This document shows positions 10,547 to 56,000 of a stretch of 64,000 nt of DNA, piece by piece. Location: the NCBI GenBank assembly GCA_977030845.1, contig OZ365115.1, forward strand, positions 10,168,001 to 10,232,000, written 5' to 3'. This stretch comes from Fimbriosthenelais zetlandica. Taxonomy: Eukaryota. Position numbers and translations under genes: made by a program. The notes under the pieces are model-generated. The model had not been told where the DNA came from. It saw only the letters and a list, made by a program, of their open reading frames with translations, and ran no database searches. Numbering within the stretch: the first letter of the stretch is position 1; every line of letters begins with the position of its first letter.

Positions 10547-13500
10547 TCTCACATTTTTGTACTTAAGAGTGTGTGTACTTATGAGTGTCTGTCTTCAACC
10601 CTCTGGGAGTGAACTGTAACCTGTCCGTGCCTTTTCATTTACTGTTAATTCTAGGTTTAGCAATCCTAGAAATGCGGTGCATGGTAGGATGTACCATGTT
10701 GTAACAGCAGCTGACTGTTAGCTATGCACATTTGTTGAATTGGGACAAGCTCGGGGCAATATATAGGTGCTAATTTATTGGGTCTTCACTGGCCCCTTTG
10801 CAAATGGGGTGCAGTTTCTTGAGCAAAAACCAGTCGGGGTTATAGGCCTACGAGCATCGCATTGCTTATTTTGGAGCAAAGGGCCAATGGATTTGTTGAG
10901 ATGTATTTGGATCCCTCCAAACTACGATTGTGACATGAGAAAAAACAACTGCTGGATAATTTCCCTGATATTAAGGAGTGCCAGAAATGGCTGCCAGGAG
11001 ATGGTGGTTTGGATGGGTTTATCGATGACGAAAGATGCTTCGGAAGCAGCGAGGTATTTGTACAGTGCACAAAGTCTGAGGACCTGTACAAAAGTCTCAG
11101 CACATGTACAAAGATCTGACGAACTGTACCAAGTCGAGTGGGATGACAGCAAATGTTCAGGAGAGACAAACACTGCACCAGATGACAGCACAGTCAGGTG
11201 CAACTCCCCGACAGATGCAGACATACAGTGGTGACTCCTGATGGATGTTAGCAGAACCTTATTGCTATGCTCTAATGGCTTTAGAACTGCCAGAGAACTC
11301 ATAGATGGGCATTATAAGACTGCAGGAAGATGACATGCGTTTCTTGTCCAAGACAAGCCCGCGAACTGGGGTATAATTATGGGACCAAACAGTTCACGTG
11401 AAAGGAAATGGAACATTTATTGTGAGAAGAAAGCTCAGGATTTTCTTTATGTGAAATGAGAGGTGTGTTGTTGTTGTTTCTTGATATGAGATGAAACACG
11501 AAGGACACACCTTTTTATATATATTTCATTAACGTGAATTCATTATCGAATCCATCATTGTAATATATGGATTGTGGACAGTGTATGTTAAAGGGCCAAA
11601 ATATTTTGCTGACTATTTTTAATTGGAATTCGAGTCATGGAATTCGATGAAGCCTACAGTGTAGCAAAGGAAGTTAGTTGAGATCGTGGGTCCTAGAAGA
11701 CTTCATGTATATGTGGCAGGTCACATTAGAAGATTTCTATGTTGACTTAAAATGATTGTGATATTCTTGTGTTCATTAAAATGGATAGATAAAAAAGGAG
11801 AATGATTGTCAACCGACACATCCTCGGGACTGTGTAAATAATTTATTGCCATATAGATTATCAGAGATCATATTATTATTGACATTACATTGACATCACA
11901 TTTATGAAAGTTGTGTCACTAGATTCTGACATGGATTTGCTATATTCTGGTACTTGTTTCATCGATTCATTTTCCTCATTAACCATCATTACAATTCTCC
12001 CTCATTGGTACATGTGTATATTTAAGCTTCTTTTTTTTTCACTCCAAACATTTTCGTTGTCTTACCAATACAGGGGGACAGTACACATGATACTTTGGCA
12101 TAGATTTGTACATTTGCAAAAATATAACATATAACTTTCACAAAGATTAAGATGGATATTATTTTGATGTAGATGTATCCGATTCTGAAGAAGAAAATGT
12201 AGTTCCAGTTGTACTCTTCTATCTGAAATTCTCCAATTTGGCGACCGGTCACACACAGTTTATTATCTGTAGTTTAATGAGTGGAGAAATGATTGAGATG
12301 TAACAATATCCACAATTATACCAATTTTATTGTCCTCAGTAGGCATTGAAATTATAACGATTGGAACTGTTGACTTGAAATTAACCCCTTCAGTTGATTT
12401 TCCTGACATCTTCTTTCTCCATATATGTGTAGGATCTGATATTCTTTTCAGAGCCTATATATATACAAATTTGTGTATATTTGCAAGCTGTACCCATCGT
12501 TTATGCTGTACATACGTAGTCCATTGAATGGATGCAGTGGAATAGTCTATATATTTAAGCTTAATGGTTAATAGTTTTCTTTTGTTAAACCTAAGAAATT
12601 AATTATAGACTTGTAAAAATATATTGTTTTGAGATTTCTGATAGAAATCATACTTATAAACATTGCAAAACCCAAAGTCAGAATAATGATATGCTAAGCA
12701 TATAATTACATGAACAATGCAAGGTTACTAACTAAACAGTTAGCCCATAAGTCAGTGGTACCGGGAGAATCGATATTAGCACCTCACATTACCTGTAGAT
12801 GGGTTATAATTATATTATTTAGCCTCATATTAATTAAATTCCCAAAACAACAAGCCAATATTAACCCAAATTAACACAACTTTTTTTTTAAACTATATTT
12901 TGGGGTGGTAAACCTCAAGGATCTTTCATCTTCCTGCTATAATACCCTTCTCCCTGTTACCCTACTACATATTTCTCCTAAATTAAACTTCCTATAATCC
13001 AGAGTGGATTGAAATACCCTTGAAGGACTTCTTTAATTAATAACATTCTAGTCATAAAAATCCATGCTTGTAGCAGTTATAACTTTAGCTCAGCAACAGA
13101 ACCGAGAAACATGACCTCAATTGTTTACCGTGATTTCATGGTCGTAATACCGGTGTTCACATGGTTTTCGTGACCTCCAATCGTTGTGAATGATATTTAA
13201 TAATTGGGGAATTCATGATGATCATAAATTGGGCTGCTTTCTTCCTTATTGGACTGTTGTTATAGGCCTGATCAGAGAGACTTCAAGGCTAGCCTCTCTG
13301 GCCTGATAGAGGTACTGTTCAGGAAATGTAGTATTTTCAGTTGTCATCTTGTTATATAAGAAGATTGGGTATCTCAAGGACCGGCGCACTCAACTATTAC
13401 TACCCATGATTAAAAAGCTAGAATCAGATAGTGAATCAGATATGAAAGTAATATCCTGTAATTACTATAGCGACACCACTTGATACACGTGTGATATAGA

Positions 13501-14232
13501 ACTTATAGTTATTTCTATTCATCTAGAAAGCACAAAGCCTTATAAGATATAATATCTATATATCTATGGCAACATGTCGAGCATGTCTAAAACCTTTAAG
13601 AATATATGTAGATCTACATGCGAGATTCTCTGACCTACTTATGTGGCATTTCGTTGATAGTGCCTCAGTGACTACTAAAATTACTTGATTTAACAAACAA
13701 CTGATAAATGGAGATCATTTTTAATGCATATGATTTGGGGAACGCATTGTATATTATCAACATGAAATAAATTATTTTTCTATCCAACCATGTCATTTCT
13801 TTTTCTCAAATCATAAATAGTAAAATTGGGTCGCCTATATTATAACCCGAGGACCCCACCACCCCCAACCTTTCGTCTCAGAGACTATTATATACCCCCA
13901 AACCCCCTCCCCTTTCCATAATCAGGGATCCACTCCTGTGAAGATTTTCACATATAATAACAAAAAATGGAAACATTATTCAGCGATTTTAATTTTACTT
14001 CATGCAGCCAGGAATGCTCCATTAAATATTTAACACTCTCGATTATGAATAAACATATACCATGATACCAGCTCTGTTAAAATAATCAGTTACAATATTA
14101 AAATGTTAGATACGTATCTATTGAGCATTACTTCAAAGATGTCATTCAGTACCTAATCATCCCTAAAGGGATGTTACATCAACATTAATATCATTAGTAA
14201 GTCGATCATCCTAAATTTGTTCAATATCTGTT

Positions 14233-15999
14233 CTAAAATCCATCATCAAGCACCACTTTCTGTGTACCAACAGCACCGCCACCATTCTTTGCAATGCATT
14301 TATAAATTATCTTGAGGATAATTTTCACTCTCCTATCTAGGGCCACCAAATTTGGTTCCAGAAGTACAGGAGCTATTGAGTCGCCTGCCCCTAACTTCCT
14401 AACAGCATCACTCAGTTTCACTGGTCCATTATGAAAATTCAACAACTTTTTCAACATAGAATGCCTCACTAGACAACATTGATAGAGAGGAGCTAGAATG
14501 TCAAGCTGATCATAGAAAGCCCTCCCGAAAGACCGACCATTGTCATAATGGACGAAGGTCGAATGTTCCCCATACTTTGTGAAGTATTCATAATGATGCC
14601 GGTCAAGATTTTGAATGAGGAAATCATAAACGGATAAGTCCATAATGTCCAACAATCTCCGTCCTGAGTTGTGCTGGTTCATATTCTTCACTTTCTGGCA
14701 GTAGTCCGGATTACTCTCCCAGTCGGCATGTTTCATTCTGCTGTAGGACCTCCGCCATGGATGTCGGGACTTACTTCTTTTCATATTACCTGTGATGAAA
14801 TAAGCTACAGAACCCTCTAACATATCAGGTGTCCCACACACAGCATGGGCAGCGTCACAGTAATAACTACATTCACCATAAAAGCATATATTATTGGAGG
14901 GAGACACAAAGAATGTATGTAAGAGTTTGTTATTTGCAAACCTTTTAATGTCACGTGTGATGTTGACGACTCGGCCCACCACTGGTGGAGCTCGATTTAG
15001 TCCAAGAACTCTGTCAACAAGAGAAGCGGCAATCTCTGATGTGTGCCTTTCATAGTCTGAGAAATAAAAATGATTCGGAATTGTATCCTGGCTCCTTGGG
15101 AGTCTCATGGGTTTGAATAGTGCTTTGCCGCCATTGGAAAATGTGAGGATAAATTTGACTTGTGTGCCACCACTAGCCGGCACTGCCTTAACGATGGGAA
15201 GTGTGCTCAGATCATGAAGGGTTTCCTCCACTGCAGGATCATCAGTTTTGAAGAGGCTGACTGGGCTGATATGGGCGTCCATCCTCTTCCAGGCTGGGTC
15301 AGATTTTGCAACATCAGGTTGCCATTCTTGCTTCGGACCAGCACCCCGATGCCTTAACACTTTCGGTTTCAAGGTTTCGAGAAAGTGCACTTCTTTCTCT
15401 GTTAGATTTACTGAACTTTCCAAAGTTTTGAGTTCTTCGAGTTTAACTGCTTGACTTTTGCCATTTGCAAATATGAACCTCTGTCCATCAAAGTTCTGGG
15501 GGCTCAGCATCTCCTTGAGCTGGTCTAAATTCAAACTGCCAGACTTGCTGGCATGTTTGATGAAATCTATTGTAAGTATAAGCTTGGCTACATTTTCCTT
15601 ATCCTCAAATGCTGAATCATTTAGAATATGCTGCAAGACAAGCAACCTGGTATCCGGCTCAGTAAGTTTAATATCATTTGAAGAGTTCAAGCTTACAAAT
15701 GTCTTATCTCTTATCAGGTCCTCCATCTCTTTTTGAGACCTACTAACACTATTCAGCTGATCTTTCAATGGAACATTAAGTTGCAGCAAGTATGGTTCTA
15801 CAGCTAAGTTTTTAGAACCATAGTTGTCTGTATTCCATAGTCCAGACAGGAAAGCCAGGTTTCCAAATAGTTTACTTGAGGACAGAGGTATAGCCAGAGC
15901 TGAAAACTTCCCAGGCATGAGATAAGGAAGGACAAAAACATAGACAAAACATATGCTCATAACCCACATGGGGACAGACCACTTACTGACTCTGGCCAT
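14233..15999 (-). CDS. FAM20C: FAM20C-like Golgi/secretory-pathway Ser/Thr kinase, single coding exon
   Basis: 588-aa ORF with an N-terminal hydrophobic anchor. Family motifs: GGTQVK, KALFKPM, YFSDYERH, NICFYGECSYYC, HPWRRSY, NLDRHHYE, HYDNGRSFG, LDRRVKIIL. Kozak context CCACCATGG. Confidence 0.93.
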   Translation of the reverse strand: MARVSKWSVPMWVMSICFVYVFVLPYLMPGKFSALAIPLSSSKLFGNLAFLSGLWNTDNYGSKNLAVEPYLLQLNVPLKDQLNSVSRSQKEMEDLIRDKTFVSLNSSNDIKLTEPDTRLLVLQHILNDSAFEDKENVAKLILTIDFIKHASKSGSLNLDQLKEMLSPQNFDGQRFIFANGKSQAVKLEELKTLESSVNLTEKEVHFLETLKPKVLRHRGAGPKQEWQPDVAKSDPAWKRMDAHISPVSLFKTDDPAVEETLHDLSTLPIVKAVPASGGTQVKFILTFSNGGKALFKPMRLPRSQDTIPNHFYFSDYERHTSEIAASLVDRVLGLNRAPPVVGRVVNITRDIKRFANNKLLHTFFVSPSNNICFYGECSYYCDAAHAVCGTPDMLEGSVAYFITGNMKRSKSRHPWRRSYSRMKHADWESNPDYCQKVKNMNQHNSGRRLLDIMDLSVYDFLIQNLDRHHYEYFTKYGEHSTFVHYDNGRSFGRAFYDQLDILAPLYQCCLVRHSMLKKLLNFHNGPVKLSDAVRKLGAGDSIAPVLLEPNLVALDRRVKIILKIIYKCIAKNGGGAVGTQKVVLDDGF

Positions 16000-18900
16000 G
16001 GTGGATTTTTATGATGCATAAACTATCCAGGTCCCAGACGTATATATTTCCATGAAGGTTAATTTGTGATAGCAATGAGGGATCATATACTACCAAGACA
16101 TGTCATATGAATATTGAGGCATTCTGAGGCATGTTGAATTAATGCTAATGTATCGTAATAATCCTATGTACACTGAAACTGCAGTTGTAGATCCATGGAT
16201 ACTGGTTCTTCGCTTCAGGGTACATATGTAGATATCATTCAGTTTAGGTTATTTTTATTTACTAACCATTATGCTATCGTTTAAGTAACTGTCTATGGCC
16301 TGTCATTTAATATCCCAGGTGATATAAGGAGGCGTGAAGAAGATAGGTCGTGATAGGTATGTTATATTCCATAGTAATAATAACCTGTGGATGAAACTTT
16401 GTAGTATTCCATAGTATGACGGTAGATGATTGATTCGTCATGTATAATGGGTCTTCGTGCCATCTGTATCATGTAATAATCAATGGATTAATGTTTTAGA
16501 GGATGTTCCTCATGTATTTACATCCGCTCCTTTACAGCTTGAACCACCCACTGACCCTATTTTAACAGGCTTCCGACCTATTTGATGGTCCTCTGAACAT
16601 TAGTGTTACCCAGAGGCAACACCTGAGTTCAACTGTTACCATCCACGCGGCAGGACTAGTGAAATTGTGATGCTCTAATACCTCGCTCAGTACGAGGACT
16701 CCTGTCTGTATACAGCAGCCTATATACCGCCATATAGAAATGTGTCATACCCAACCTTGTTAATTATATATACCATTATATCTGAGAAAAAGGTTGATAA
16801 TGACAATACTCCATAATGAAATGCACAAAATGATCAAAATTGATAGAATAAAGGAAGGGAATTTAATGAAATCCCAATGTAATAATAGCCTGATTATATC
16901 TCTGATGCAGAATTATCTGCCCGGATAATTAAAATGATAATAGGTTAATTACGTAATAAAAATTATTATGATTTTTATAGTATTTGATATGAACCCTTCC
17001 CCTAATAAAGTCTGCTTCCATTTACTGTGGTAACATTTAATGTTTACTTTCCATGTATAATGATGTTTTGGGTAGCACAAAACTCCAGATGTTCAGTATG
17101 GAGATCATACTATCACTAGAATTATGTTGGTCTGGCAATATCTTCTTAGCACTAAGAGAACTTTCCAATGATGCGTCCCTTACAGGCATACTATAATAAT
17201 TTTGGCATTTAAATGCACACTCCGGTGACAAAATGCTATAGAATTTTTGTTCTCATGTTCACAGCTGTTTAGCAGGTTTGTTATGTGTCCAAAGTAGACC
17301 CTTTACTTGGCATATAAATAGTCCAGTATTATATAATTATGCATATTATGTATCAGAGACCCTAATTTGGTAGACTCAACTGGTGCGCACTCGTTGAAAA
17401 CAACACTTTTTACACATACACTGGGGTGTATGTATATTGCTGTACATATGCTACTCTTTCATTTCCCTCTCAGTCAGTCTTCTGCCCCACCGTGCATGCA
17501 TGCAGTCTCAGCTGGCTCTCAGACAAAGGGTAGGCAAAAATACATTTTATTCACATAGCATTTTCCTACTTTTTAAAAGTGCATAGGGCCTATGAGACAA
17601 TTAGGTTTATTTTCTGTAATACAAAATTTCATTATGTGAATTGCATACATGACCGAATGGAATTAAACGTTCTAGGTTGGTTGAAAGGGCCCTGAAGCCA
17701 AACCTTTTATGAGTCGAGGCGTGACAGCTTGTGGTATTGCGACACGCCCCTACTTTGACCTTACCTAGATTTTAATGTTCCAATGTTCGTCATCAGAAAG
17801 GGATTTAATTACTATACTATATTTCGTAATTCTTTTACAATTATTTATCAGATGTATTGATTTAATGGTGATCAACGCCCCTGGGGTGTTAGAGGGCGCA
17901 TGCCCTATAGGTTTACAACCAGCTGCCCTCTTTTATAATGTATTTTTATAGTATTTATTATGACATGAGTGCCTGTCGGTGCCAGCAGTTCTGAATGCTT
18001 ATACCTGGGTTACCCACATGTTATTAAATACCTACTGAAAAGGCATTTGATTACTCTTAACAGTGTCATTTAATTCCTTTGCATCTCTTTGTTCTTTTAT
18101 AAATGAGATTGTTTGCAATATTTATGACATGTTCATGATAATATCACAGCACTTGGCATTTAAATGAAAGCAGCCAGAGTAGAACATATTGTAGCATTGG
18201 CTACATTATAATTCCTCAGTGACCCTTGATCATATTGATGGCAGGGGGGCCTAATCCCAGTATATTGGATCTAGTATATCATCGAGAGTGTTTTGTCTAC
18301 TTCCGCCAGTATATCATTTTAACCCAATACCATGATTTCTATATACTGAACCCCCTGTAGGCTTATGGTCCTATATATTGCACCAGTGCCAATATCTATT
18401 CACATAAGATGAGAAATGATTCATAACTCCTACCAAAGGTTATAGATATTGAATGAGGAATGAGAAATATGGGCAACTTCTCTTATGTGAAGAAATTTGC
18501 CAAAGATTTCATTCATTTTTTTCATTATATATAATTTTCCGTAGAAGTGTACCACAGATGCTGGTCCACACAGAGTCAAATAAAATGGATAATTGACAAA
18601 ACAATTTTTGAAATGTCAACATCATCCTACATAGTCAAATCCTATATATAGCCATGATTATAGCCTATGTGAAATACCACCTGATTGTGTTGCCACTTTC
18701 TTACGCACTCTAGTACTACCCCTGAAGGCTCATCAGGGTTCACTTTTTTATTTTTAACTGCATGACAAAAAGACTTATATGAAAGTTTACTACGAAAAGA
18801 TTGTTTAGAAAATTATATTTTTGAATCTTGTATCCCTGACACAACGATATACCTATAATGGTCTTGTATGTGAGTGGGGTGTGTGTGTTGTACTTTCTTT

Positions 18901-21900
18901 TGAAGTGAGAATTAGATGCATTGATGTGCCAGCTGATACAGCACTCTTCAAGGCCTTTCTTTTGGTCTCTCAGATGTGATCAGCCCAGTGCACGCTTCAT
19001 TTATGGTCCGTCTTAATTGAAGTGACCAATTCACCACACTCAGTGCGATGCAACTGACACCCTATGTTTAGCCTGGCCTAAAAATATCTTCGGGAAGAAG
19101 GGACCAGTGTATGATTTCTACATTTTATTGATGATGAATTAGAATTTAGATAGTAATATAATGTTGAATATGCTCTGCAAAATAATTAACCACTAATTAA
19201 TAATTATTATTATAGGCCTACATATTATGATATTTTGTACTATTTCATAACCATTTAATTATTCACTTGACACGCCCTTCTCCGAAAGGAAGGAACACGC
19301 CACAGGAATATCCTGTCAAGTACTAAAGATGATTTGTTACAGAATTGTAATGCCCAACAGCACCACACCCTGCTATGAAGTGTCTATAGTGCGCAGATCT
19401 ATGCTTAATATCCATATATGCAAGTTAAGACGACCCCGCCCTCTGCATTTCGAGGGGATTACCCTGAAATGCAAAGATCATATGACAAGAGGATGAAAGG
19501 ATCTACTCAAAAAGGGGGTTCTCTTTTGCCCTTGGCCAAATAATAGAAGCAATGATATGCTTTGTATTGTTCAATGGGCAAAGACATCCAATTGGAAATC
19601 TATGGAGTTTGGTCAGCTCTCAGGGACAGACATTCAATTAAGCAGAGGAAGGTGTTGACGGTTGGGTCGTCATCGGTAGTCTTATTTTTTTTAATGGGGT
19701 CTACGCAGGAAGTCTCATTATCATCTTTTGAATACATTTATTGGGTACGTTGACTATTATAGATTCTATAGGGCGTTACTGCAGTCCTGTGAATTTTCTA
19801 ATGAAGGAGGAGTGAAAATAACACTTCCGGATAAAATGACTGGAAGAGTTATTGCCCCATTGCATTATCGACACTTAACATTGGAGCTTTAATCCCAATG
19901 TAAAATAATCCTACTATAATAAATAGAAAAAGTAAATGACGTTCATATACTGATGAGTTTTAGTTATTAAAGTCAAAATCAATTGTCAGATAGAGATATC
20001 TCTGGCCATGCTGATCTGTATTCGGAACAAAACAGTTTGATTAAGTTGAACAACGTATTTACAAGTACAGAAGCAATTTACATAAGTAGTATAAAGGAAG
20101 CAGAGTAATCCACGGGATATCTGATTGATTCACTGTTAATAACAGTGTTATTCAATATCGGGATGATTGTTTCATTTCTTACGAAATCTGAACCAGGGAG
20201 AAGTAGAAATCACAAACCATTAAGCAAATTGGAAATTTAAACACCTCCTCACAACATTATACTAGAATGCTCAGTTTAGGTACATGCACGACTAGTAAGT
20301 GTCGAATCATTAATATAGTGATAACTGTAATGCTGAAGCCTATAGTATTGCATAGAATGCAGCATGAGCCAATAATCCTATATGAAAAGCGTCATCCCAT
20401 GCCTCCTCTCACTCACACCCACTAATATTAATGAGAGAGGTCGATGCGTTATTCATCTTCCACAGGTGGATATGCAGCACTTGCTCACTTGTAGAACTGC
20501 CTGCCCTTAGTTCACATCAGTGGCTTGAGACACTAAGTGCTGAATATGTACACATACCTGCAATCTTCTCCTGTGCATACATTTGCTCCGGTAAAGGACA
20601 AGAATCTTGTTCCTCCAGCGTTCTTACCTTGTCATGTCTTAACACCTATACCGGATGTTTTGTGAAGAAGGTCTCTGATGCTTGAGGGATATATTCGGCT
20701 GCTTTCACTGGGATGTAAAGACCCTATCAAGGATTTTCCTCGAGGTTGTTATTTTGGTGCAATCCTTTGCGAAATACAGGTTACCTGCAGGAGTTTCTCT
20801 TTTTGCAAAGAACATTAACCTTTCAAATAAATTTACAGTCATCAAAGTCTGGGAAGAGATTGCAGAAACTGTATATTGTTCATCAAGTATAAATAATATC
20901 TTCTCGGTTGCCGTCTACAGGAGAAATATTCCGATTCGTCCATCGTGAATGCTCAAAATGTTTGGAGATAGGAATAATTCAGACCGAGCAAAGGGAGCAC
21001 ATTTGTCTCGATCCATCGTAATATAAGAAGATTTACCTTGGTACCTTTATTGACAGAGCTTTGTGTGAATTGTTATCTTCAAATACAAGACAGTGTACTC
21101 AGCAGGCGAAATGCTAATTTAAAGTTAGGTGAGGATGGTGGTTATAGTTCTATAAGTATCACCATTATTTCACCCACCTAGACAATAACAGTGTCTCATA
21201 TTCTCAGGGGAACATCCCTCCTCTCAATTCCTCCTGGAAAGATTTTAGATGAACCTTTCATTTTTACTATGTTAAACAAATCTATCAGCGATAAAACATC
21301 AATGCTACTCTCGCGGATTAGACCTTTCAATTGTCTGAAACATGTAAATCGCCTTCCTATCCAAACATAGTTTTTCTATGAAATTAAAGGTCTTCAACAT
21401 GTTGCATAGAAGCATGTATGCAGTATCCTTCATCAAATATTCTTTCACGGATGGGCATGTTGAGACGCATTATATTTCGTATGCAAATCAATATGTATGG
21501 CTTGATTTCATGGAACATATATAATATCCAATATCAATTTGCAGGGAATAATAATATATAATGGACCCTGAAATATGTGGAAATCCTGGCATTCTAAATT
21601 ACATGATGGAAAATGATGGATGGAGAAAATTTATGAAGGACCGTTTACTTGTGGCCTCAACCAATCTGATGTGCATCCATTTTCACATTATGCTCACACG
21701 AACACATAATGTTTACCAGGTTCCAAATGTTTACAAGCTTGGGTAGGCAGATGGATGGAAAGATCAATAATATTGTCTATGACAATAACATACATGGTGG
21801 AATTTAATCTAGAGATGTATACACAGAAAGCAATATTGATCGCAGTTGACATGGCGACCTCATAATTCTACTATTAAACGGAAAACGACTTTGGCAAATA

Positions 21901-40149: not shown

Positions 40150-43100
40150 TCATAGGTGGCTCTCAACTTTAAGAAATTGTTGGATGAATCCGTTTAGTTC
40201 GCTGTCTAGGTAACCTGCCTTGTTCCTGAAAGAAATAGAAAAATAATCAATCTAAATAGGCCTACCTATCAGCTTTAAAAATCAGTTTCGGCCTATTACA
40301 CTTTAGTATACGAATTATAATAAATATTTTATATAATCTGCTGAATACTGACTTGAGGAAGCTGGATCTGTTGGAGACCGTGTCTAACTTGCTGATCTCG
40401 GCTGTGAGTTTCTTCAGTTCCTCCTCCAGCTCTTCCTTAGCGATATCCACTTGGCGTGACAGGCGGCCAAACGTGGATTGCAGCTCCCTGATAATCAAAA
40501 ACAAAAATATTTTCAAAAATGTGTCAATTCGAGATATTCCAAGTAGTTCTGGTATAATTATATTATTTACGCTTTGCTAAGATGGTACATATTTAATCAA
40601 TTTTTCCTCGGAATTTTGTACCATATTTTGTACCATAGATGGATAATAATAGACTTACTGTTGTACTTGATGGCTTGAATTGGAGCTGGTGAGGTCGAGG
40701 ATAAGTTTCAGTTTGCCAGTGGCATAGTCCACATACTGCTTCTTGAAGCAGCGCTCCTTGGCCTTGTTGGTCCATGTAAGACGTTCATACAAATAGAGGA
40801 GGCCGTAACAGGCCCCACAGATAGCAATCACCCGCCAGCCTGCTGCTTTAGCAACCTGTAAAAAATGTGAATGAATATATAAAGGGACAAAGTACAAACG
40901 CCCCCACCCCCACACCCACCCCCAGTTTATTTAACCTTTCACGGCCTACTAGAAAATTTAAAATCTACTGACTTTGCCCAACACAGAGAGAATGGTAAAC
41001 CTATTTATAAAAGGCAATTTGAACAAGTAATTTAATTCCCTCCATTTAAATGTAATTAATATGTTGTCAATATAGTTTTGTTGGTAACGTACCAGACCAC
41101 TGATGGCTAGAGCACCTATGGTAGACCTGGAGTAGAGAGAGGAGAAGGTGGTAATAGCTGAGAGGATTAACTCCGTCTCCTGTCCGGGTGGTCCTTTATA
41201 TGTCTCATTACTGGGTGTCTGCGGGGTCGTCGGTATACTTGGTGGAATCTGAAGAGAAAATTGTTAATTTCTCAATCTTCAATTACCGTAAGCAATATGG
41301 AAGGGATTTTTTCAAAGCAATGAACAGCTCCAATATTGACGAAATCATAAAATTTATAAATTCAAAATATTTTTTTTAACTGATGGACTCACATCTGGGT
41401 AGTTCCTGAGAATCCTACTGGTGCCTTTGGGACCCAGGAATCGATTCATCAGAGTAGTGAGGCCCAGAGAGAAGCGGAACTCAATGTCTTCCCTGAAGTC
41501 ACCACAGAGACTCCGACAGTCGAGGCGGTAGGTCACCTCAAATTCCTTATTGGGGATAAAATTGAGAGCCTGTTGCTTGGCTTCCGCAGGTAACAGGGCG
41601 GTCAGGCGTTCTGCCAAAATCAGAAAAAATACAGAGCTTGATTTGTATTCTACGAGACAAACATTGATGAAAATACCAGAAAGTAAAAACCTAATACTTG
41701 AAAATATTATTTCAATATTACTCCTTAAATATTAAAATTTCTATTTCCAAATGATATCATAATTTATACATAGATAATATAGATTAATATGTCATGTAGT
41801 TAGAATTTGGAAGGGCAAAAGCATGCAAGAAGAAGCAATTGGTCATGTGCTCGAGTCAGGGGAAGTAAAATGTGTCAACAGTAGTGATGGAAAAGTAGGC
41901 CGGCAGTAGCACGAAGTCTTCAAGTGTTTTTTTCCCACGTATGGCATGTTTGATTGGGGACTTTTTATACATATATACATGTATCTGAGGAGCATCAACT
42001 ATTCTCTCTCATTAGAGGCCAAGCTATGATAAATAGCTGTGGATATTGCATCCAACAAAGCTAGCCAGTTAGAGCAAGTCAGTTATAAATGTTTTTAAAA
42101 GAACTTCGATTTATCCACTAAGCAGTTCAAAGCAAGGACTTGCCTTGAACAAAACATTTATATGAAACATAAGCTATCTCTTCGAGGCAATATTTTCAGC
42201 AACAATCCACTCACTGGCCGATGGCCTTAAGCCTGGGTCAATCTCCCATGTCCAAAGTGAGGAGCAAACAAGACGTCATAATTGGCTTTAGCTCTCTTTC
42301 TCTCATACCTGTCATTTCACTGCAAGTTTGGTAGACTCCGGCTGCTAGCTGAGTGGAGAGACGCTCCTGTAAATTACGACCTATGGCACTCTCTACGTGT
42401 ACATACAGCTCCTAGTTCACACAGACAAAAAAACAGACTCATGCCATAAATAAAGGCAAGCCACACATAAAGCATTTCCCAGCTGCTTGGGCACAACAAC
42501 ATAGAGGCTGTACACAGCTTTAGGGCTAACTTCCCATTGTCAGAGAAATGTCACCATTTTCTTTCATAACAGGTTATTCCAATGTTGCATCTAAGGTACC
42601 TATATAAAACTGGAAAGGCAAATCAGAAAGCTCATGGTATTTTGATATTTGAACCCATATTACCTGGAGGATTTAGTCTGAAAAGTGAGATTTCTCTTCC
42701 AAAGGGACAGTCAACCCCTTTGTTCTCTCACAGGGAAGACAGTTTGTGCAAGAAGGCAAATATCTTAGGAAAATGAAAATTTGGTGCGGTTTGGACAAAA
42801 ATAAACCTGCCGGATGTCTGTAAATGAAATGAGGGAGATGACAGGGGCGACAGAGAAGGAAAAACAGAAAAGAAAGTGTGAGAAGAGGTGGGAGAAATTT
42901 AGTCCGTCTCCATGGACCTCTCATTATTAATGTATGGTTTTCATTCAGGTATGGGGGACATATATAGAGGTATGTCGGAGGGGAGGGTTACCTTGTATAT
43001 CATGATTAGTTGAGGCGATAACCTGCTCTATGAAGGAAGAACAGCGACTGTGCAGGTTCCGCCCCAACACATCCTCCATGTGAAAGTGTAGCTCCTTCAA

Positions 43101-46100
43101 ATAATATTCAACTTGTGTTCAATTGGTGGTGGTTTTTCAATATTTTATAAACCGTCAATAATAAAATTACTTAACTAGAATATAGTAGAATAAAGACAAA
43201 CTATCTCTTACCGACTAGACTTACCAGGGGTATCAGATATACCGTTTTTTCTTGTTTTTTTTAAATAATTAATTTCTGTCAACATCATTGGTACCAGTAG
43301 CAGGTTTTCATGATTATTAAAACAAAATAATCTTGCCGAATCTAAATCTGTTGAAGGTCGTTCTATGACTATGAGGTTTGTTTACCTTCTTATAAACGTT
43401 GAGGAGCATGGCATCAGGATGGAAGGGCCTATCAAACTCGTCCACAAGTAATGCTAGTCGCCGAATCTCCTCAGTCAATGCACTCGAAACCTGAAAGAGT
43501 TAAGATGAATTGGGAAATGTTCAGGCTATCTCACTCTCACTATTCCCCTATAACAATTTTTATGACGAAAGATACATGTGTAGAACTAAAATCTCCAATA
43601 GTCACAGGTCACGCCACAAACGCCTATGACAAGTTCTCTATTTCTTAGAATACAAGGAATATAGGGTTACACTGTAGGAAAGCTATCTGTACCGACCTTT
43701 CTGTCCACCTCCTCTGTCATATGCCGTATTTTGTCCTTTATCTCGCCTGTTAATAACGACAATTGTTTCTCTGTGTAGTCTAACTTATCCCGCAGCTCCT
43801 GCTGACTCAACTCACAATGATTCCTGATAAAAAGGAAGAAAGTATACGTATTCAAAAATCTATTACTGGATCAATTAATTCTCAAAATTTAATATAACTC
43901 TAACAAACATTTTAAACTAAAAACAAGAGCAAGGTTCATAAAAGATAAATGATTCTAAGATTGGAAAAAAATATATATATACTGCTTTCATGTACTACTC
44001 CTTTCATAATACTACCAGTTAGCCTTTTTTAATTGAAAATATATCAATTATTAAGGAGACAGTTGTTCGTCCTGGAAACATATATATTAAATTAAAATGT
44101 CAAACTTACTTCTTGACGATAGCACTCTCATAGACGTCATCCATGAGGAGGCGGAGGTGACAGGTGATCAGTTTACCATTCTCTGTGTGCTGGGCAAACT
44201 TAGTCTGAACGGCCGACTGGGAAATACATTCCTACAATGACAGAATTAATGCTATTACCTCCAAAATGTTAAGCTATAATTGGTTAATGATTCTTAAACA
44301 AAACCAACAACATATCAGAGACCAATAAATCTGTACCGACCTCAAATTTCCTCTCGAAGTTACAAAATTCGAAGAGTCTCCCTTGAAATCCGTCTAACAA
44401 AGCTCCGCCTGAAGCAAAAATTATTACATGAGATTGGAAACCCTGCCAGATAAAAGGAAGTGAAATTATCCAATAAATTATAATTACTTATTACATTCCA
44501 CACTGAATTGAATTGTACGGAACTTGGAAGAACTGCATCAGAATATTGAAATTCCTCGATAATTTAAGGATAATTTAAACTCTCACATTTTTAAAAAGCG
44601 GGGCAGCATTCCAGCTCTATGACAATATAGTTATATACACCGTACACACAGGATGGACTGCAGCAATTGACTGCTGAACGATATATCTCTTAAATTGCTA
44701 AAATATGTTGTTTTTAATTTTATCAGAGGTTTGTGTTTAGGCTTCTCAGACTATTATTTTCTACATCTAATTTTTAGCATGAATTGGACAAGTAATTTCC
44801 TTAATTTGCACATAAACAATATTTATGGGACCTTACTCAAGCTCCATAATATGACTATACCAATATAGAGAAGGGTAGAATGAGTGAGGATACAGGCGAG
44901 AGAAAAGTGTGCTGAAATTCAAAGTAAGTGAGAACACACAGAGAAAGTTGCTGGGTTTTAACGATGGGGACTGACTAGTGTAGTCATTGCTAGGAGTTTT
45001 CCAGATCATACTTTCAGCCCAATATGGGTCGGCTTTACCTGGGTGTGGCGCTGGAGCCAGAAGTGATAATTGGTCTCCCGGGAGACCCTCACTGTCAGCT
45101 GGGCAGAGGGGCACAATATGGGAGGTTTCAATAGTATCAAACATAAAGAACCTAATATTTATAACCATTAATAATGACAACTTCAAATAAACACAGTACG
45201 ACTTCAAAACAGTTTTATATCTCAAGGTTTACTTGCATTTTCTTTTAATCACAATCTAACCATGATATGATGGGAGTCATTAATTTTGGGTAGAGTAAAA
45301 ACACCTATTTGTTGATTGGGGATAGGAGGAAAGGAAAGAAGATAGCTCTGAGGACACTTCAATGTACTTACTAGGTGTAGGTGTTCCCTTTTCTTGGTTT
45401 GACCGGGAAATCAGGGCTTCCCGAGCTGAGACAAAGAAGACACGGTTCTCTGCTTCTTGTCTGGTCATCACTTTGAGTTCATCCACCAGGAAGGCAACAT
45501 TACGATCCCAATGTTGCTGCTTCACCTAAACCAGTCAAAAATGATAACCAAGGGGCATATTTAAGACTAGAAAGTAACATATACAATGATAAAATATGAC
45601 CAGACAGATAGATTGGTATATTGAACGATAAAATGTTATTCTAATAGATCTTAATCTTACCTCCTCCATAAATTCCGGCTCAGAAGCTGAGGCATCCCAA
45701 CGGTTGTTGAGGATGAATATATTAGGCTTGGATAATCTGGTGCTCACTTTATGGAAGAAATTCTTTTCCTAAAAAAGCAAAAATTAAGATTGAGATGGAA
45801 ACCGATTCATTAAAGCAATTGGAAAAAATTGGGTAAAATCCTTAGAAATATGGGAGGGCAGAAGTGAGATGGACTGACCGTTTGCATGAGTGTAGACTCC
45901 GCGTTGGCCACCAATACAAAGACATCAGCATCCAAACAGTGCTCGTCTATCCAACTGTCTAAATCAGGTGATACGTCTATACCAGGGCTAGAAAGTAAGG
46001 GCAAAAAATTAGAAATATTTTTTCAGAGGAACTATAGTTTTAAAGAGTACGCCTTCCAATATAAATTTATATCAATATTTGCAAATTGGGTATATTTTAT

Positions 46101-48824
46101 TAAAACAAATATTTATTAAATATTATCACTGTCTACTGTAGGATACTCACCTATCTACCAGTACGACATCGTCCCGAAGCAGACTGCATTCATTTTTAGG
46201 CCAACAGATCCGGATAAGACTGTCCTGATCTAACTTTGCATTGGAGAGAGCATGCGCTAATTGGCGAACAGTCTGGAAAATGAAGATAATTTAAACGATT
46301 TAAAGTCAATTCCCTTTATAAGCACTTAGAAATAAGAATGTATATATATATGTGCTGGCTATTATAAAAGAGTTAAGCTGGCTATTACCTCACAGAAAGC
46401 ATTGTGCGAACACTATGTTTTTGAATTTATTCTGAATATGTTCATTAGTATTTGAAGACAATGTTCATGAGTTGACATACCTGTAGGTTTTGTGGTGAGG
46501 AGTCGGCGTCAGTGAGGAGGTAAGCGGTTTCACTGTCACAACCCTCCACCTGTACAAAACAGTTCGTAGTGTGACCGATTCCTGACGGTAAGATCCGGTC
46601 CTTTAACATTGCATTAATTACCGTACTTTTCCCATTAGACGTCCTGAATAAATAAACCAACAATGTTTTAACAGGAGAAAACCTCCAGCTTTCAATATTT
46701 CAATTTAAGAGTTCAATCAATATCTGTAAATAGGTTTCGAGGATAAAAATATTCAATACTAACTTTGATTTTCAAAGTTTGGTCAATGGACAGAGACATT
46801 AAAATTACTAACCTTCCAAAAAAGGCCACCTTCATACGGTCCCTGCTGAGCATCTCCCTGATGCGGGCCACCTTCTGTATATAGGACTGCACCTGCTCCC
46901 TCTGCTCAGGTAAAACAATGCCATCCTCAGCGACTGGAAAACCAAACGTCTCATCATTCAATTTATCAAAATAACTCAAATAAGAGACTATTAATGACTG
47001 ACAGATCAATTTAGAGAATATTACGAAAATGGTATTGTGATTAGCCCTGTTGTACAAAGTTAAACTTATTTCAAGTTTGAGAAGTAAATTATGATGAGGC
47101 TAGACCTCAAAATGAGGAGCCATTTTTGTCGCCATTTTTGGCTCCCTATAAGCCAAGAAAGAAAAGAAAGAAGCCGGGGGAGGGGGCAATTTTATAATAC
47201 ATAATAAATTAATCATCGTCACTTTACTCAAAGATCGTTTAATAAACTGCTTCGGTTGTTTCAGTAGACTCGTAAAGATTTCAGCCTACCCCACTGTTTG
47301 TAGCTGACCAGTGGGCAGTGGTGAGGAGGGGGTGTTTCGTACTGCTAATATGTCCTAGCTTTTGACCCCATGTGAAGCTTTCTACCAGTACCCTGCTGGT
47401 GTGCTTGTGAAATACATGTCCACCTAAATGGTTGGCTTGTTGCTTCCAACTAAATACCCCCCCCCCCCCCCCCACCCACACCAATCACTCTACCCCTCGC
47501 CAATACACCCCCCCCCCCCCCGCCACATGGTGGCGGGTCCGATGCTCATCCTCCGACTCGGTCATAACTTTTACTAAACTACCCCCCCCCCCCCCTCTCC
47601 AATGGACACAACCGAGCGTCTTCTGTATGCGTGAAAGCTAAGGCCTGGCCTGTGCCTCGAACCCCACAGTGACACCAGCTACACACCCCCAGTCTGGGAG
47701 TAGGGGGGCAGTTAGTAGGGGGAGGGGTGTTATAGCTGGTGGTGGGTTCTAGTCAATCCCTAACTCTTAGCTTTTATCTGTGGAGCTTGCTTCACTGGTT
47801 TTCTAACAGGTGGCTCTCAACCTCCCACTGGTGGCTCTTCCAGATATATCCCGCCAACCCCCCCCCCCCCCCCCCTTCCCCATACCCTGCTATATAAACA
47901 CAACACTGCCTGAGGGGTGTAGTCGTCAGGGTATCTGGTGGCGACTGCAAGCCTTGGACATAATCAATCAGCAAGGCCATATTAATCAATCTACATGGGC
48001 CAAAGGTAAGTAATAATACGATAATTGATATCATGTTAATTTTACAATGCAGCAATTGGGTAGGATCAGACAGCTCTGATCAGATACTGGGTAATTCAAA
48101 CCAACATTCAAACCAAAAAACGCAACTTTTAACTTTGAAATTAGCCACTCACGTCATCCACCAAATTCCAATTTTGTAATTAGAGTTTTACAATGAGATC
48201 ATGAAACTGGTAGATGACTAGAAGTAGAATTCACCGTTTGTATAAGACTCACTCCTTTTAGCTATAGTTAATTTGGAGCGGGGAGTTAGTTGTTCACGGG
48301 CTGCCATGCCATCTCCTTTAAACAGAGTCACATTATATGGATGGGAGAATTAAGCATAAAATTAAAAAGATACTTTACTTGAGTAGCTATGTTTGCCGGC
48401 TTTCACTTAAAGGGGTAGGAGTATATATTTATTTATGTTATGATAAATTTCTTCTGCCCTGGAAATTATCTTTTAATTACCCGGTACTAACCATTCATCA
48501 ATCATGTAACTGTTATATGCTTACTGATTAAATTAAAACTTTTAAAGTGAAATTCATCACACTTAGTACATAATTAGTGTCGTCAAATGACAGTAGCCTT
48601 TTACAATCTTAATCATAATTTCTATCTTTCTTACCTCCAAGAAACTTGTGAGCTTCTTCAATATAATTGCCTATCTCCACATAGATGTGATTAATCTGCT
48701 TCTTAGCTTGTCCAAACAACTTGAGAGGGGAGGTCGGGGAGTGCCTGCCATTTCCCAGGTTCCGTGGACCCTCGGTAGGTGATGTGTCGGCCATCGATGT
48801 ACTCCGCCTTAGTTCACCTGACAT
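40150..48824 (-). CDS. Marf: Mitofusin (Marf/MFN), dynamin-like outer mitochondrial membrane fusion GTPase
   Basis: Exons: 48824-48635, 46933-46813, 46643-46481, 46272-46151, 45987-45879, 45768-45661, 45525-45372, 44408-44341, 44231-44110, 43823-43697, 43490-43386, [43094-42992 or 42411-42309], 41610-41393, 41248-41093, 40855-40659, 40487-40353, 40225-40150. Motifs: [14 protein letters not shown] (G1), GIGHTT, DSPGID, NNRWD, GWRVI...[11 protein letters not shown]-terminal heptad repeat. All phases are consistent. Confidence 0.97.
42309..42411 (-). CDS. Marf: Mitofusin alternative exon B of a mutually exclusive pair
   Basis: gaactag|...|gtatga, 103 nt, phase 0 to 1; [34 protein letters not shown]. 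Confidence 0.85.
42992..43094 (-). CDS. Marf: Mitofusin alternative exon A of a mutually exclusive pair
   Basis: tttgaag|...|gtaacc, 103 nt, phase 0 to 1; [34 protein letters not shown]. Confidence 0.8.
45039..45098 (-). CDS. Marf: Candidate 60-nt frame-preserving cassette exon of mitofusin
   Basis: cccctctgcccag|CT...G|gtaaag, phase 1 to 1, open, GC-rich against the surrounding intron; (T)[19 protein letters not shown](G). Confidence 0.5.
47457..47875. repeat. Cluster of four long poly-C runs with hairpins in a mitofusin intron
   Basis: C-runs at 47457-47473, 47508-47521, 47582-47595 and 47858-47875. Inverted repeats at 47521-47535 and 47674-47740. Confidence 0.75.
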
Positions 48825-49721: not shown

Positions 49722-50943
49722 ATGATGGCGGGCGCTGAAGAAGATTATGAACACTTGGCGGTGGAGCAGGTATTTACTCCTTAGCAGTTTTGTCATAGTT
49801 CGGATTAAGTAGAAATCAAAAAAGTAATACTAATGTGTTGATCATTGATGATCCTGGTCCATTTAGTCTATGGGAAATTGGTGTAATATGGCGGTATTTG
49901 GGTAGTTGTTTGAAGCTGAGCGATAATATGTGATACTGTCAATATCTATAGCCTAGGAACCCTAGACTAGTCTGACTTAGTCCTACTCTTACTCTTAGTA
50001 AGACATGGACATAGCCCAGAACAATTAAATAAATTTTGAGAAGATTTATTTATTCACATGGCGTGGAAACACAACTCATGATATGATTAAAACAGACTTT
50101 AAGTCACTTACGACTGTTTGGTCATGTAAAAAATGCCGGTGAAATTAAATTTACCGGTAAATGTTTTATTACCTGTAGTCTACCCGTACTTGAAATACCC
50201 GGTACGGTATATCATATATATGTAGGCCCAAACCTATTTAGTAATTAATGTGGCAGTAATGTCATTATCATTATTTGATTTCCTGCAGCGCTTGAAAGCA
50301 GCTGTGCATTACTCAGTTGGGGAGCTCTGCAAGAGCTATCAACTTGAAGATGGGGAGCTGAGATACAGCAAACAATTCATTGCTGTCCTTTCAGAAGCAA
50401 CGTACAAATATGCTTGTACAATGGCCTCCGACCTTGAGGCTTTTGCTAAGTAAGTATTCTAAGTACAGGTACCGTGTTTAGTACACATTTACTTAAATTA
50501 GTATATATAATTTATTTGATTGAGATTAAACCATAATATGTTTTCTTTGATTTAGTCCTAGACATTTATCATGAGGACAGATACTATCTGCTAAAAGTTG
50601 GTTGTAAGAAATGTTTTCATTTATTATAGACATGGCAAAAGAGCGAACATCAACGTGGAAGATGTGAAGTTGCTTGTTCGTAAAAGTCGAGACTTGGTAA
50701 GGATACCATGCAGTACCGTACCAGTAAATTTCCTATAAATAAAGTATCAAGGCAACATATATGTGTTATAGAAAATCTGTTGAGCCTAGAGGTGTTGAAT
50801 TGTAATTATCTTTTCAGCATGCTCATATTTCGGACTTGGGAGATCAGCTAACAAATGAAAGTGAAGAAAAAAAAGCCAAGGCCAAGAAAAGTCGACCCAA
50901 GAAGAATGCAGCAGCAGCTACAGTTGAATCAGACGGGGACTGA
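49722..50943 (+). CDS. CENPS: Centromere protein S (MHF1/APITD1), histone-fold protein
   Basis: Exons 49722-49769, 50289-50449, 50630-50696 and 50818-50943. Translation: QRLKAAVHYSVGELC...FSKQ-like YSKQFIAVLSE...DLEAFAKHGKRANINVEDVKLLVRKS, with a basic tail. Confidence 0.93.
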
Positions 50944-52825: not shown

Positions 52826-53058
52826 TGTTCCGATTTTCCGATTAGGAATACACAAACGAAGCCGCTCTTGTTGGAGGCCAAATTTTGGAACTCTCCTAAA
52901 ATGAAACAAGAAAGAGGAGTCACTTCCGGTCTCGAGCGCGGTGTGATTTCAAACGAGACAAGCGCCATTTGTTTCCGCTGTGGCAGGATTTCCCTGCCTT
53001 GTATTTCATAACACATTGGAGAAATTTACAACAGCTAGGGTGTAGATCGTCCACCAAA
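52826..53058. promoter_or_regulatory. Compact bidirectional promoter between SPCS1 and XRN1
   Basis: Only 233 bp separate the two start codons. ETS CACTTCCGGT at 52921-52930, a YY1-like GCGCCATTT near 52962, CpG-rich. Confidence 0.7.
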
Positions 53059-56000
53059 ATGGGAGTCCCCAAGTTCTATCGCTGGTTAAGCGAACGATAT
53101 CCATGTTTAAGCGAGGTGGTCAAAGATTACCAGGTAGGTACCCAGTGTCAGTGACTGACACTGTCCATGACTAGACTATGTTCCCCACTCAGCCTCAGCC
53201 TCAGGCATGAGTGACTGGGGTCTCCCTCGGCTCGAATACCATATCCGTTTAGTTCTAAGTTCCTATTTGATGTCAGCTACTCCTCTTTACAGATCTAATT
53301 TGTGGCTTTTGAAAGAACTGAATTAGTACTCTATCATCTATGACGTCTGAGTCTGATAATTGAAATATTAAGGGTACTGAATTGCAACTACTGAACTAGC
53401 CTAGGGCATATGACTAGTCACTAGATGATACGTAGTAGATCTATGACTATGAGGAATTATTTATAGACTAATTTTAAATTTAATTAAAGGTTTAAATCTA
53501 GTACCCGGTACCCTTGTGGCCATTTTGAATTTTTAGCCATTTACAATCATATTTGGACTTGTTTCATATAAAAGTCAAGGGAAAAGTCTTGGACTGGAAT
53601 TGCACACTAAATTCCCTGACTTTGACAAAGCCAGAGAGAACCCAGGGAATTGAGTGATCCGGGAAAATGGATTTTTTCTAAAAGGTCGTGGCAACCCCAA
53701 ATGATTTTTTTTTCATTTTTTAAGTACCGGTAATTTTATTATTTTTTTTCATATCGACACAAAATGGGAATAGGGTAATGTGGAAGGGGGTAATTGGGGA
53801 AGGGGATGACGGGGGAATGGGGTATCGGAAAAAGCTAAATTATTGCATTATTGCAAGCAATAATGTTAAAATCTAGAACTTTAGATTTTCTTGTTATATT
53901 GGTTAACCCTGCGTTCTAATAAGTTTTATTTCGGTTTTCAGATACCAGAATTTGACAATCTTTACCTTGACATGAATGGCATCATTCACATATGTTCGCA
54001 TCCCGACGATGGCAATCCACATTTCCGTATAACAGAGGAGAAAATCTTCAATGATGTCTTTCATTACATAGAAGTTCTGTTCCGTATGATTAAACCAAAG
54101 AAAGTCTTCTATATGGCGGTTGATGGCGTAGCACCCCGTGCCAAAATGAACCAACAAAGGGGCCGCAGATTTAGGTATTTTTAAAAATTAATTATCTATA
54201 ATTATGTTTGAAATACCTTATTAATTTTTAAAATGTTATATGCTTTACATATGGTACTTCCTTTGCTCAGATCTGCTAAGGAAGCTGAAAACCTGGAAAA
54301 ACAGGCTTTGGCTAAAGGAGAAGTCCTCCCCACAGAGAAGAGATTCGATTCCAACTGTATCACCCCAGGTAAAATGCCAGTATTGTAGGCTACTGTAAAT
54401 TGAGGAATTCATTGAATTCAGTAACTTCGAATTAAAGGAAGTAATGAATTAGGGACAAGTTAAGAAACATTCTGTGATTATTTGCAGGCACAAAATTCAT
54501 GGTGAAACTTCAAGAACAGCTGAAGTACTTCGTTGTAAACAAAGTGTCAACGGACGCTTTATGGCAAGGGCCCAGGATCTACCTGTCTGGTCATGAGGTA
54601 AGCATAATTTCAACAAGCCACTGGAGCCTATGTCAAATATTATGAGAAGAAAAAATTATATCTTTTTCCTATTACCATTGGTAAAATATGAATCATAACC
54701 AGTTATTTTCTTTTATCTGTAGACACCTGGAGAGGGGGAACATAAAATCATGGATTTCATCCGATCTGAGCGAGCTACACCTGATTATGATCCAAACACC
54801 CGCCACTGTCTCTATGGTCTAGATGCGGATCTGGTAAGTCAATAACTATAAAGTTAATGGGATTTAAGATTAACGAAGAAGATTAATCCCATTTGATTGT
54901 CTTTTCCTGAAACGCACTGTTTTAAATTGTATCCCTTCTGGTAATTGACAGATTATGTTAGGAATGGTGACCCATGATCCCCACTTTTCCCTGCTGAGAG
55001 AAGAAGTGAGGTTCGGTGGAAAAAACGCACAAAAACGGAGCAATGCGCCTGAACAAACCACCTTCCATCTCCTCCATTTACAACTCCTCCGAGAATATCT
55101 AGATTTTGAATTTAGTTCATTACGGGTAAGAAAAATTTCATTGATTGTCTAAACATTGGTTATGAATTATTGTGGCATTATTGTACAATTAAACAGAACT
55201 GGTTGCTAAATGTGGATGCAAATGTACATGTCTCTGATAATTTTATCTTTGATCTTGCCAGGAATCTTTACCCTTCGCCTATGACCTGGAGAGTATAATT
55301 GATGACTGGGTATTAATGGGCTTTCTCGTCGGTAATGATTTTATTCCCCATTTACCTCAAGTTCACATCCACAGCGACGCTTTACCCCTACTGTGGGCCA
55401 CATATAAACAAGTCTTGCCTACATTAGATGGTAAGTCCTTTACTCTGCTTTTAAGTAATCGTATGGCACCTCGTCTACCATTCCATAGTACTCATAGAAG
55501 CCAAGAGTTTGTAAATAAATTGCCTTGTCTTTGAAATGAGTTATTGCCCTAGGGCTGCTTATAATTAATTTTGTATCTTATCTTCCTACTCAGGATACAT
55601 CAATGAAACAGGAAAGCTAAACCTGCCAAGATTCGAAAAATACATGCAGAAATTGTCAGAGGTGAGTATACATGACATTGTATATAGATGCATAAAATTT
55701 GTCCCCTAATTCAATTAATTTAATTCATATATTCTCGCCTGATCTAATTATAGATTTGCTGATATTAAATTTGGAAAATGAATGTTAAACATTAACTCTA
55801 ATGTATTCTGTTCGCAGCATGATACAGATCAGTTCCGTGACACCTATGCGGATCTCAAATGGTTGGAAAGCAAAACAGGAAATGCTGCTGGAGTTGGTCG
55901 AAGGCACCACAGAAAGGTGAGGAAATAAATGTTGCAAGAAAATTGTCATATGGATAATTTTGGGAAGTTCTGAGAAAAGAAACACAGATGACTATGGAAT

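Follow-up and report, generated by a model that had tools for sequence, protein, structure and literature searches.

Can a single invertebrate gene make two mitofusins by choosing between two versions of one exon? The question is raised by a mitofusin gene of Fimbriosthenelais zetlandica, located in a stretch of 64,000 nucleotides of contig OZ365115.1 (the window), where an earlier note pointed to two tandem exons, here called A and B, that encode the same segment of the protein between the same flanking exons. Here we report that this exon pair is real, old, and undescribed in the literature that we found, but of a familiar type, and that such isoforms already exist as computed RefSeq entries. 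A and B are most probably genuine tandem mutually exclusive exons, one of which is included in each mRNA, and which arose by an exon duplication early in lophotrochozoan evolution. The mitofusin exon pair is an old and very likely working switch, shared with molluscs, ribbon worms, a lamp shell and other annelids.

A mitofusin gene with a tandem exon pair

The homologue-guided splice model of the gene (Table 1) yields a full-length protein that is 60-72% identical to named mitofusins. The closest database protein is P0154, from a transcript-length JGI contig (72% identity), followed by P0153 (68%), nemertean proteins (65-66%) and a Capitella protein (64%), an order of matches as expected for an annelid. 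The G1 motif GRTSNGKST was found in the spliced model, a dynamin-type GTPase domain was detected on the exon at 46645..46481 (Pfam PF00350, Dynamin_N, E 3.6e-10), and the Fzo_mitofusin region, comprising the membrane anchor and the C-terminal heptad repeat, on the exon at 40855..40658 (PF04799, E 4e-33). The predicted product is a mitofusin (Fzo/Mfn/Marf outer-membrane fusion GTPase). Intron 1 of the gene contains a G-rich/C-rich stretch of simple sequence, probably a low-complexity repeat, in which several frames would encode runs of proline or glycine. A small CENP-S (MHF1) histone-fold gene lies head-to-head upstream of the mitofusin (PF15630, E 2e-13), and the window also covers the beginning of a gene for an XRN-type 5'-3' exoribonuclease (Pfam XRN_N, E 2e-34).

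Table 1. Positions of the mitofusin gene, its exon pair and neighboring features in the window, and of the homologous exon pairs in five other genomes
Sequence	Feature	Positions	Strand	Remarks
Window	Mitofusin gene	40150..48824	-	17 coding exons with one of A or B used, 757 aa, all introns GT-AG
Window	Constitutive upstream exon	43386..43490	-	105 nt, ends ...VYKK, donor AAG/gtaaac; 77-89% identical to homologues
Window	Exon A	42992..43094	-	103 nt, lophotrochozoan-specific ('divergent') version, donor AAG/gtaacc, weak polypyrimidine tract
Window	A-B intron	42412..42991	-	580 nt
Window	Exon B	42309..42411	-	103 nt, by class the orthologue of the single canonical exon, donor CAG/gtatga, strong polypyrimidine tract
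Window	Constitutive downstream exon	41393..41610	-	218 nt, begins ERL...; first two bases finish the split codon
Window	Simple sequence in mitofusin intron 1	47280-48060
Window	CENP-S (MHF1) gene	50250-50738	+
Window	XRN-type exoribonuclease gene, start	52969-55534	+
Lamellibrachia (L001)	Divergent first exon	14578-14680
Lamellibrachia (L001)	Canonical second exon	15652-15754
Aplysia (L003)	Divergent first exon	11296-11398
Aplysia (L003)	Canonical second exon	13662-13764
Tubulanus (L004)	Divergent first exon	15939-16041
Tubulanus (L004)	Canonical second exon	19345-19447
Capitella (L005)	Divergent first exon	2272-2374
Capitella (L005)	Canonical second exon	2579-2681
Lingula (L002)	Divergent first exon	5983-6085
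Lingula (L002)	Canonical second exon	6714-6816

The coordinates and peptides of the two exons were reproduced, and with them the earlier description of a tandem pair of equal length and phase with canonical splice sites and no stops. Both exons have an AG acceptor and a GT donor, enter in phase 0 and leave in phase 1, and are free of stops in the frame of the upstream exon; the last base of either exon is the G of a GAA codon whose other two bases open the downstream exon. Joined sequences of upstream exon, A and downstream exon, and of upstream exon, B and downstream exon, both stay open. When A and B are included together, the frame meets a stop 13 codons into B; when neither is included, it meets one at the third codon of the downstream exon, so the frame shift that had been predicted for either event is borne out. 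Structural features by which tandem mutually exclusive exons are recognized were found at this locus: adjacency, equal length and phase, sequence homology, consensus splice signals and non-productive double forms. A low-stringency tblastn search of the 64,000-nt window revealed no third copy of the exon.

The same pair in other lophotrochozoan genomes

Mitofusin loci were compared from Lamellibrachia, Lingula, Aplysia, Tubulanus, Capitella, Antedon and Limulus. The pair is present in all five lophotrochozoan genomes among these, which represent annelids, a mollusc, a nemertean and a brachiopod (Table 1). At all five loci both exons are exactly 103 nt long and bounded by AG and GT, and the order of upstream exon, divergent exon, canonical exon and downstream exon is that of the window. 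That five other genomes have the pair with position, length and order unchanged is far beyond chance. Window exon A matches the first exon of the Lamellibrachia pair at 24 of 34 residues, and window exon B matches the canonical exon of that species at 17 of 34. The canonical exon of the transcript-derived P0153 is itself identical to that of the siboglinid Lamellibrachia at 33 of 34 residues.

In the crinoid Antedon and the horseshoe crab Limulus, tblastn with 19 exon variants detected a single exon, the canonical one, in the interval bounded by the flanking exons, and a scan of the upstream intron of both species for open 103-nt exons bounded by AG and GT returned low-complexity hits only, none of them credible. 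Since the Limulus locus includes 967 N and a query of 34 amino acids has limited sensitivity, this absence is provisional.

The pair is unannotated in Capitella and Lingula, and public RefSeq annotation of some relatives already models it. In Capitella teleta the intact first exon is missing from protein model P0227, and in Lingula anatina from models P0157, P0223 and P0224. The 'Mitofusin-2' model of Lamellibrachia satsuma (P0151, 779 aa) strings both exons together (L001:14578-15754) through a spurious bridge of 35 residues, an error of gene prediction to which the exon pair gave rise. These gene models need correction, in Lamellibrachia for the fused exons and in Capitella and Lingula for the absent first exon. 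An over-long mitofusin model with a very high score was also encountered in Ixodes scapularis (P0226, 1159 aa); fusion or duplication in the gene model may account for it.

Isoforms and transcripts that differ in one segment

Isoforms for comparison were collected by a database search with the downstream exon and by word-based searches, which yielded many lophotrochozoan mitofusins labelled isoform X1 or X2, and cluster members were then added. Isoforms X1 and X2 of Aplysia are both 764 aa long and differ at residues 470-500 only. Likewise, the RefSeq pairs of Tubulanus, Lineus, Crassostrea virginica, Littorina, Babylonia, Biomphalaria and Mya are of equal length and have 20-24 differences, all within the 34-residue segment. 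Equal-length RefSeq pairs that swap this segment alone, all of them computed isoform models, thus exist for at least eight mollusc and nemertean species. The isoforms of Antedon and Lingula differ from one another elsewhere in the protein.

Evidence independent of gene prediction comes from Logan de novo assemblies of two cephalopods (contigs of 3-4 kb), in which P0319 and P0323 (744 aa) have 28 differences and P0245 and P0344 (742 aa) have 30, in both cases all in the segment. The canonical exon of these cephalopods is itself strongly diverged (DLQEHCSK...). Among the transcript-length contigs closest to the window protein, P0154, P0228 and P0192 carry an A-type segment and P0153, P0229 and P0193 the canonical one. 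The two forms can be represented very unevenly: among the assembled contigs of a cuttlefish-like species, 18-20 had the first-exon form and 1-2 the canonical form, and all oyster contigs that were read had the canonical form. The mutually exclusive reading proposed in the earlier note fits the structure of the locus and agrees with these transcripts and RefSeq isoforms of relatives, which differ in the swapped segment only. We infer from the sequence that both A and B are used in Fimbriosthenelais zetlandica.

Two exon classes and their origin

When 21 first exons were compared column by column with 18 canonical exons and 8 exons of outgroups, some residues proved common to all classes (E1, L2, H3, E7, L10, R12, N13, L14, R17, C18 and S19) and others were shared by canonical and outgroup exons (G11, Q15, L22, V26, T29, M33 and T34). 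The first-exon class mostly has C or S at position 11, varied residues at 15, I22, and I, L or M at 33. Window exon A is of this type, in the annelid variant (H15, F21, I22, I33), and window exon B, which keeps Q15, L22, V26, T29, M33 and T34, belongs to the canonical class. By these class assignments, exon B is orthologous to the one exon that other animals have, and exon A represents a class specific to lophotrochozoans.

In a maximum-likelihood tree of the 34 columns, the two exons of a species never cluster together. Window exon A falls in a clade with annelid and nemertean first exons (99/99), the first exons of molluscs and Lingula form a second group (90/89), and window exon B lies in the poorly resolved part of the tree that holds canonical and outgroup exons, with an end branch of 0.77 versus 0.18 for A. 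A tree constrained to unite all first exons is worse by 5.5 log-likelihood units, which is not enough to reject it (AU p = 0.283). Given that position, order, length and phase are constant, one early lophotrochozoan duplication is the simplest reading; less parsimoniously, there may have been two old duplications.

The earlier note had likened exon B to Drosophila Marf and exon A to vertebrate MFN. As a statement about raw scores this holds, with insect segments scoring 80-87 with B and 56-62 with A, and lungfish MFN2 scoring 85 with A and 66 with B. As a statement about descent it fails, given that B is the canonical orthologue and A belongs to a class found in lophotrochozoans only. The 'RL' of exon B is a substitution in this lineage, since the canonical exons of other lophotrochozoans keep 'RC'.

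Constraint and alternative readings

Because the genomes at hand are too distant for dN/dS, constraint was gauged by counting differences at the three codon positions. Between window and Lamellibrachia, exon A differs at 9, 6 and 23 first, second and third positions, and this third-position excess is the pattern of purifying selection. The corresponding counts for exon B are 14, 13 and 15, nearly even over the codon; compared with four other phyla, they are about 15, 12 and 21 of 34.

These counts bear on a distinctly unlikely alternative, in which this species inherited the pair but no longer uses one exon, most likely B, or is losing it, so that a single protein carrying A is left. No canonical exon in the set is more diverged than B, in which the near-invariant C18 has become L; its long end branch and its nearly flat differences from Lamellibrachia point the same way, and the skew among cephalopod contigs illustrates how one-sided usage can become. 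Set against this, B retains an open frame, its exact length, a strong polypyrimidine tract and a consensus donor, and the 17 residues that it shares with the Lamellibrachia canonical exon include all six of its class-typical ones listed above. Moreover, its second-position differences from other phyla amount to about 35%, far under the roughly 75% expected at neutral saturation. We read exon B as faster-evolving in this lineage, under relaxed or shifted constraint, and not as lost.

The pair might instead be mainly a dosage switch, with regulated double inclusion or skipping giving rise to degraded mRNAs and the difference between A and B proteins being of little consequence. Both aberrant splice patterns do give early stops, as such a switch would have it, but each class holds its own residues over several phyla, and both exons are preserved as coding sequence, which pure dosage control does not need; we regard this reading as very improbable. 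Practically no weight can be given to an assembly artefact or a very recent copy. A and B agree at only 49 of 103 nt (48%) and 11 of 34 amino acids, which indicates an old divergence rather than an assembly duplicate, the intervening introns are unique sequence, the window is without any N, and the pair is present in five independently assembled genomes. The artefact that the earlier note had allowed for is ruled out on these grounds, and tandem mutually exclusive exons remain the preferred reading.

How exclusivity could be enforced

In the mechanism that we propose, inclusion of one duplicated exon per mRNA would give two mitofusins of 757 aa that differ in 34 residues only, B being the ancestral version and A the added one. 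Exclusivity is enforced at least by the reading frame, through the early stops that follow double or no inclusion, and the out-of-frame mRNAs would be removed by nonsense-mediated decay. The poor polypyrimidine tract of A compared with the strong one of B hints that A needs an activator.

Two other devices were considered and rejected: crowding of splice signals is excluded by the length of the A-B intron, 580 nt here and 204 nt in Capitella, and U12/U2 incompatibility is ruled out by the donors, which are all U2-type. An inverted-repeat scan over 2 kb found 24 weak pairs (12-23 nt, 72-100% complementarity), none of which pairs one site with both exons, and Rbfox-type (U)GCAUG motifs had no consistent position across six species. 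In the minus-strand RNA, a stretch of 13 nt at 42946-42958, located 34-46 nt past the donor of A, is 85% complementary to the donor region of B (42299-42311). Such pairing could mask the donor of B when A is used, but the region has many pairs of comparable quality.

The swapped segment in the protein

Experimental structures are available for residues 25-401 and 679-753 of P0154 only, and none includes the swapped segment or helical bundle 2. In the AlphaFold model of P0154 (mean pLDDT 76), residues 466-499 lie wholly in one helix (457-503, pLDDT about 88), which comes after a long helix (332-440) and a loop with the FHPD motif. The segment thus occupies some three quarters of a predicted long helix in helical bundle 2, the one leading back from the post-HR1 loop, and this model agrees with the earlier placement of the segment in the helical region between HR1 and the membrane anchor. 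The spacing of the class-defining positions (11, 15, 18, 22, 26, 29 and 33) by 3-4 residues suggests one face of a helix.

The mitofusin isoform-specific region (MISR) of Mfn2, K355-C535, consists of part of the HB1 helix and two loop-joined HB2 helices, and has been shown to set fusion activity and nucleotide-dependent assembly (Sloat et al. 2019, PMC6743458). By location, the swapped segment corresponds to about residues 465/466-498/499 of the 757-aa vertebrate MFN2 and thus lies within the MISR. The A- and B-form proteins may differ in function, and the idea that splicing could do here what paralogues do in vertebrates gains one lead from this position of the segment inside the Mfn1/Mfn2 specificity region. 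A bolder proposal, tentative and on balance unlikely, is that lophotrochozoans have kept for about half a billion years a splice switch that swaps one HB2 helix in the specificity region, and that its products are functionally distinct fusogens, maybe working best as a mixed pair. If this were true, the fusogens might differ, for example, in nucleotide-dependent assembly or hinge behavior, and the gene would be a one-gene counterpart of the division of labor between vertebrate Mfn1 and Mfn2. The pair offers a natural, minimal swap of 34 residues inside an experimentally defined specificity region, kept in at least four phyla, which would mark one helix as functionally tunable and supplies isoform pairs for fusion and assembly assays.

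Comparison with known systems

Alternative exons are not described for any mitofusin in the literature that was searched. The closest parallels are the RefSeq X1 and X2 forms of mitofusin-2 or mitofusin-2-like proteins in Aplysia californica (P0168/P0161), Tubulanus polymorphus (P0203/P0009) and Crassostrea virginica (P0206/P0205), which show the same 34-residue swap at unchanged length and, where the genome was read, the same two 103-nt exons in the same order. Unlike the locus described here, these are computed models from other phyla, and the annelid first exon classes with the nemertean one.

In having duplicated exons of equal length and phase that encode one and the same structural segment, the pair resembles classical tandem mutually exclusive clusters such as that of the metazoan muscle myosin heavy chain (PMC3912159). 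It differs from them in being a simple pair without convincing competing RNA pairing, splice-signal crowding or U12-type sites. In the docking/selector clusters of arthropods, a conserved intronic docking site is complementary to a selector by each variant; the inverted-repeat scan revealed no such arrangement for the window pair. As in vertebrates with their Mfn1 and Mfn2 paralogues, there would be two mitofusins per organism; whereas Mfn1 and Mfn2 are encoded by separate genes and differ over their whole length, the change here is confined to 34 of the 181 residues of the MISR.
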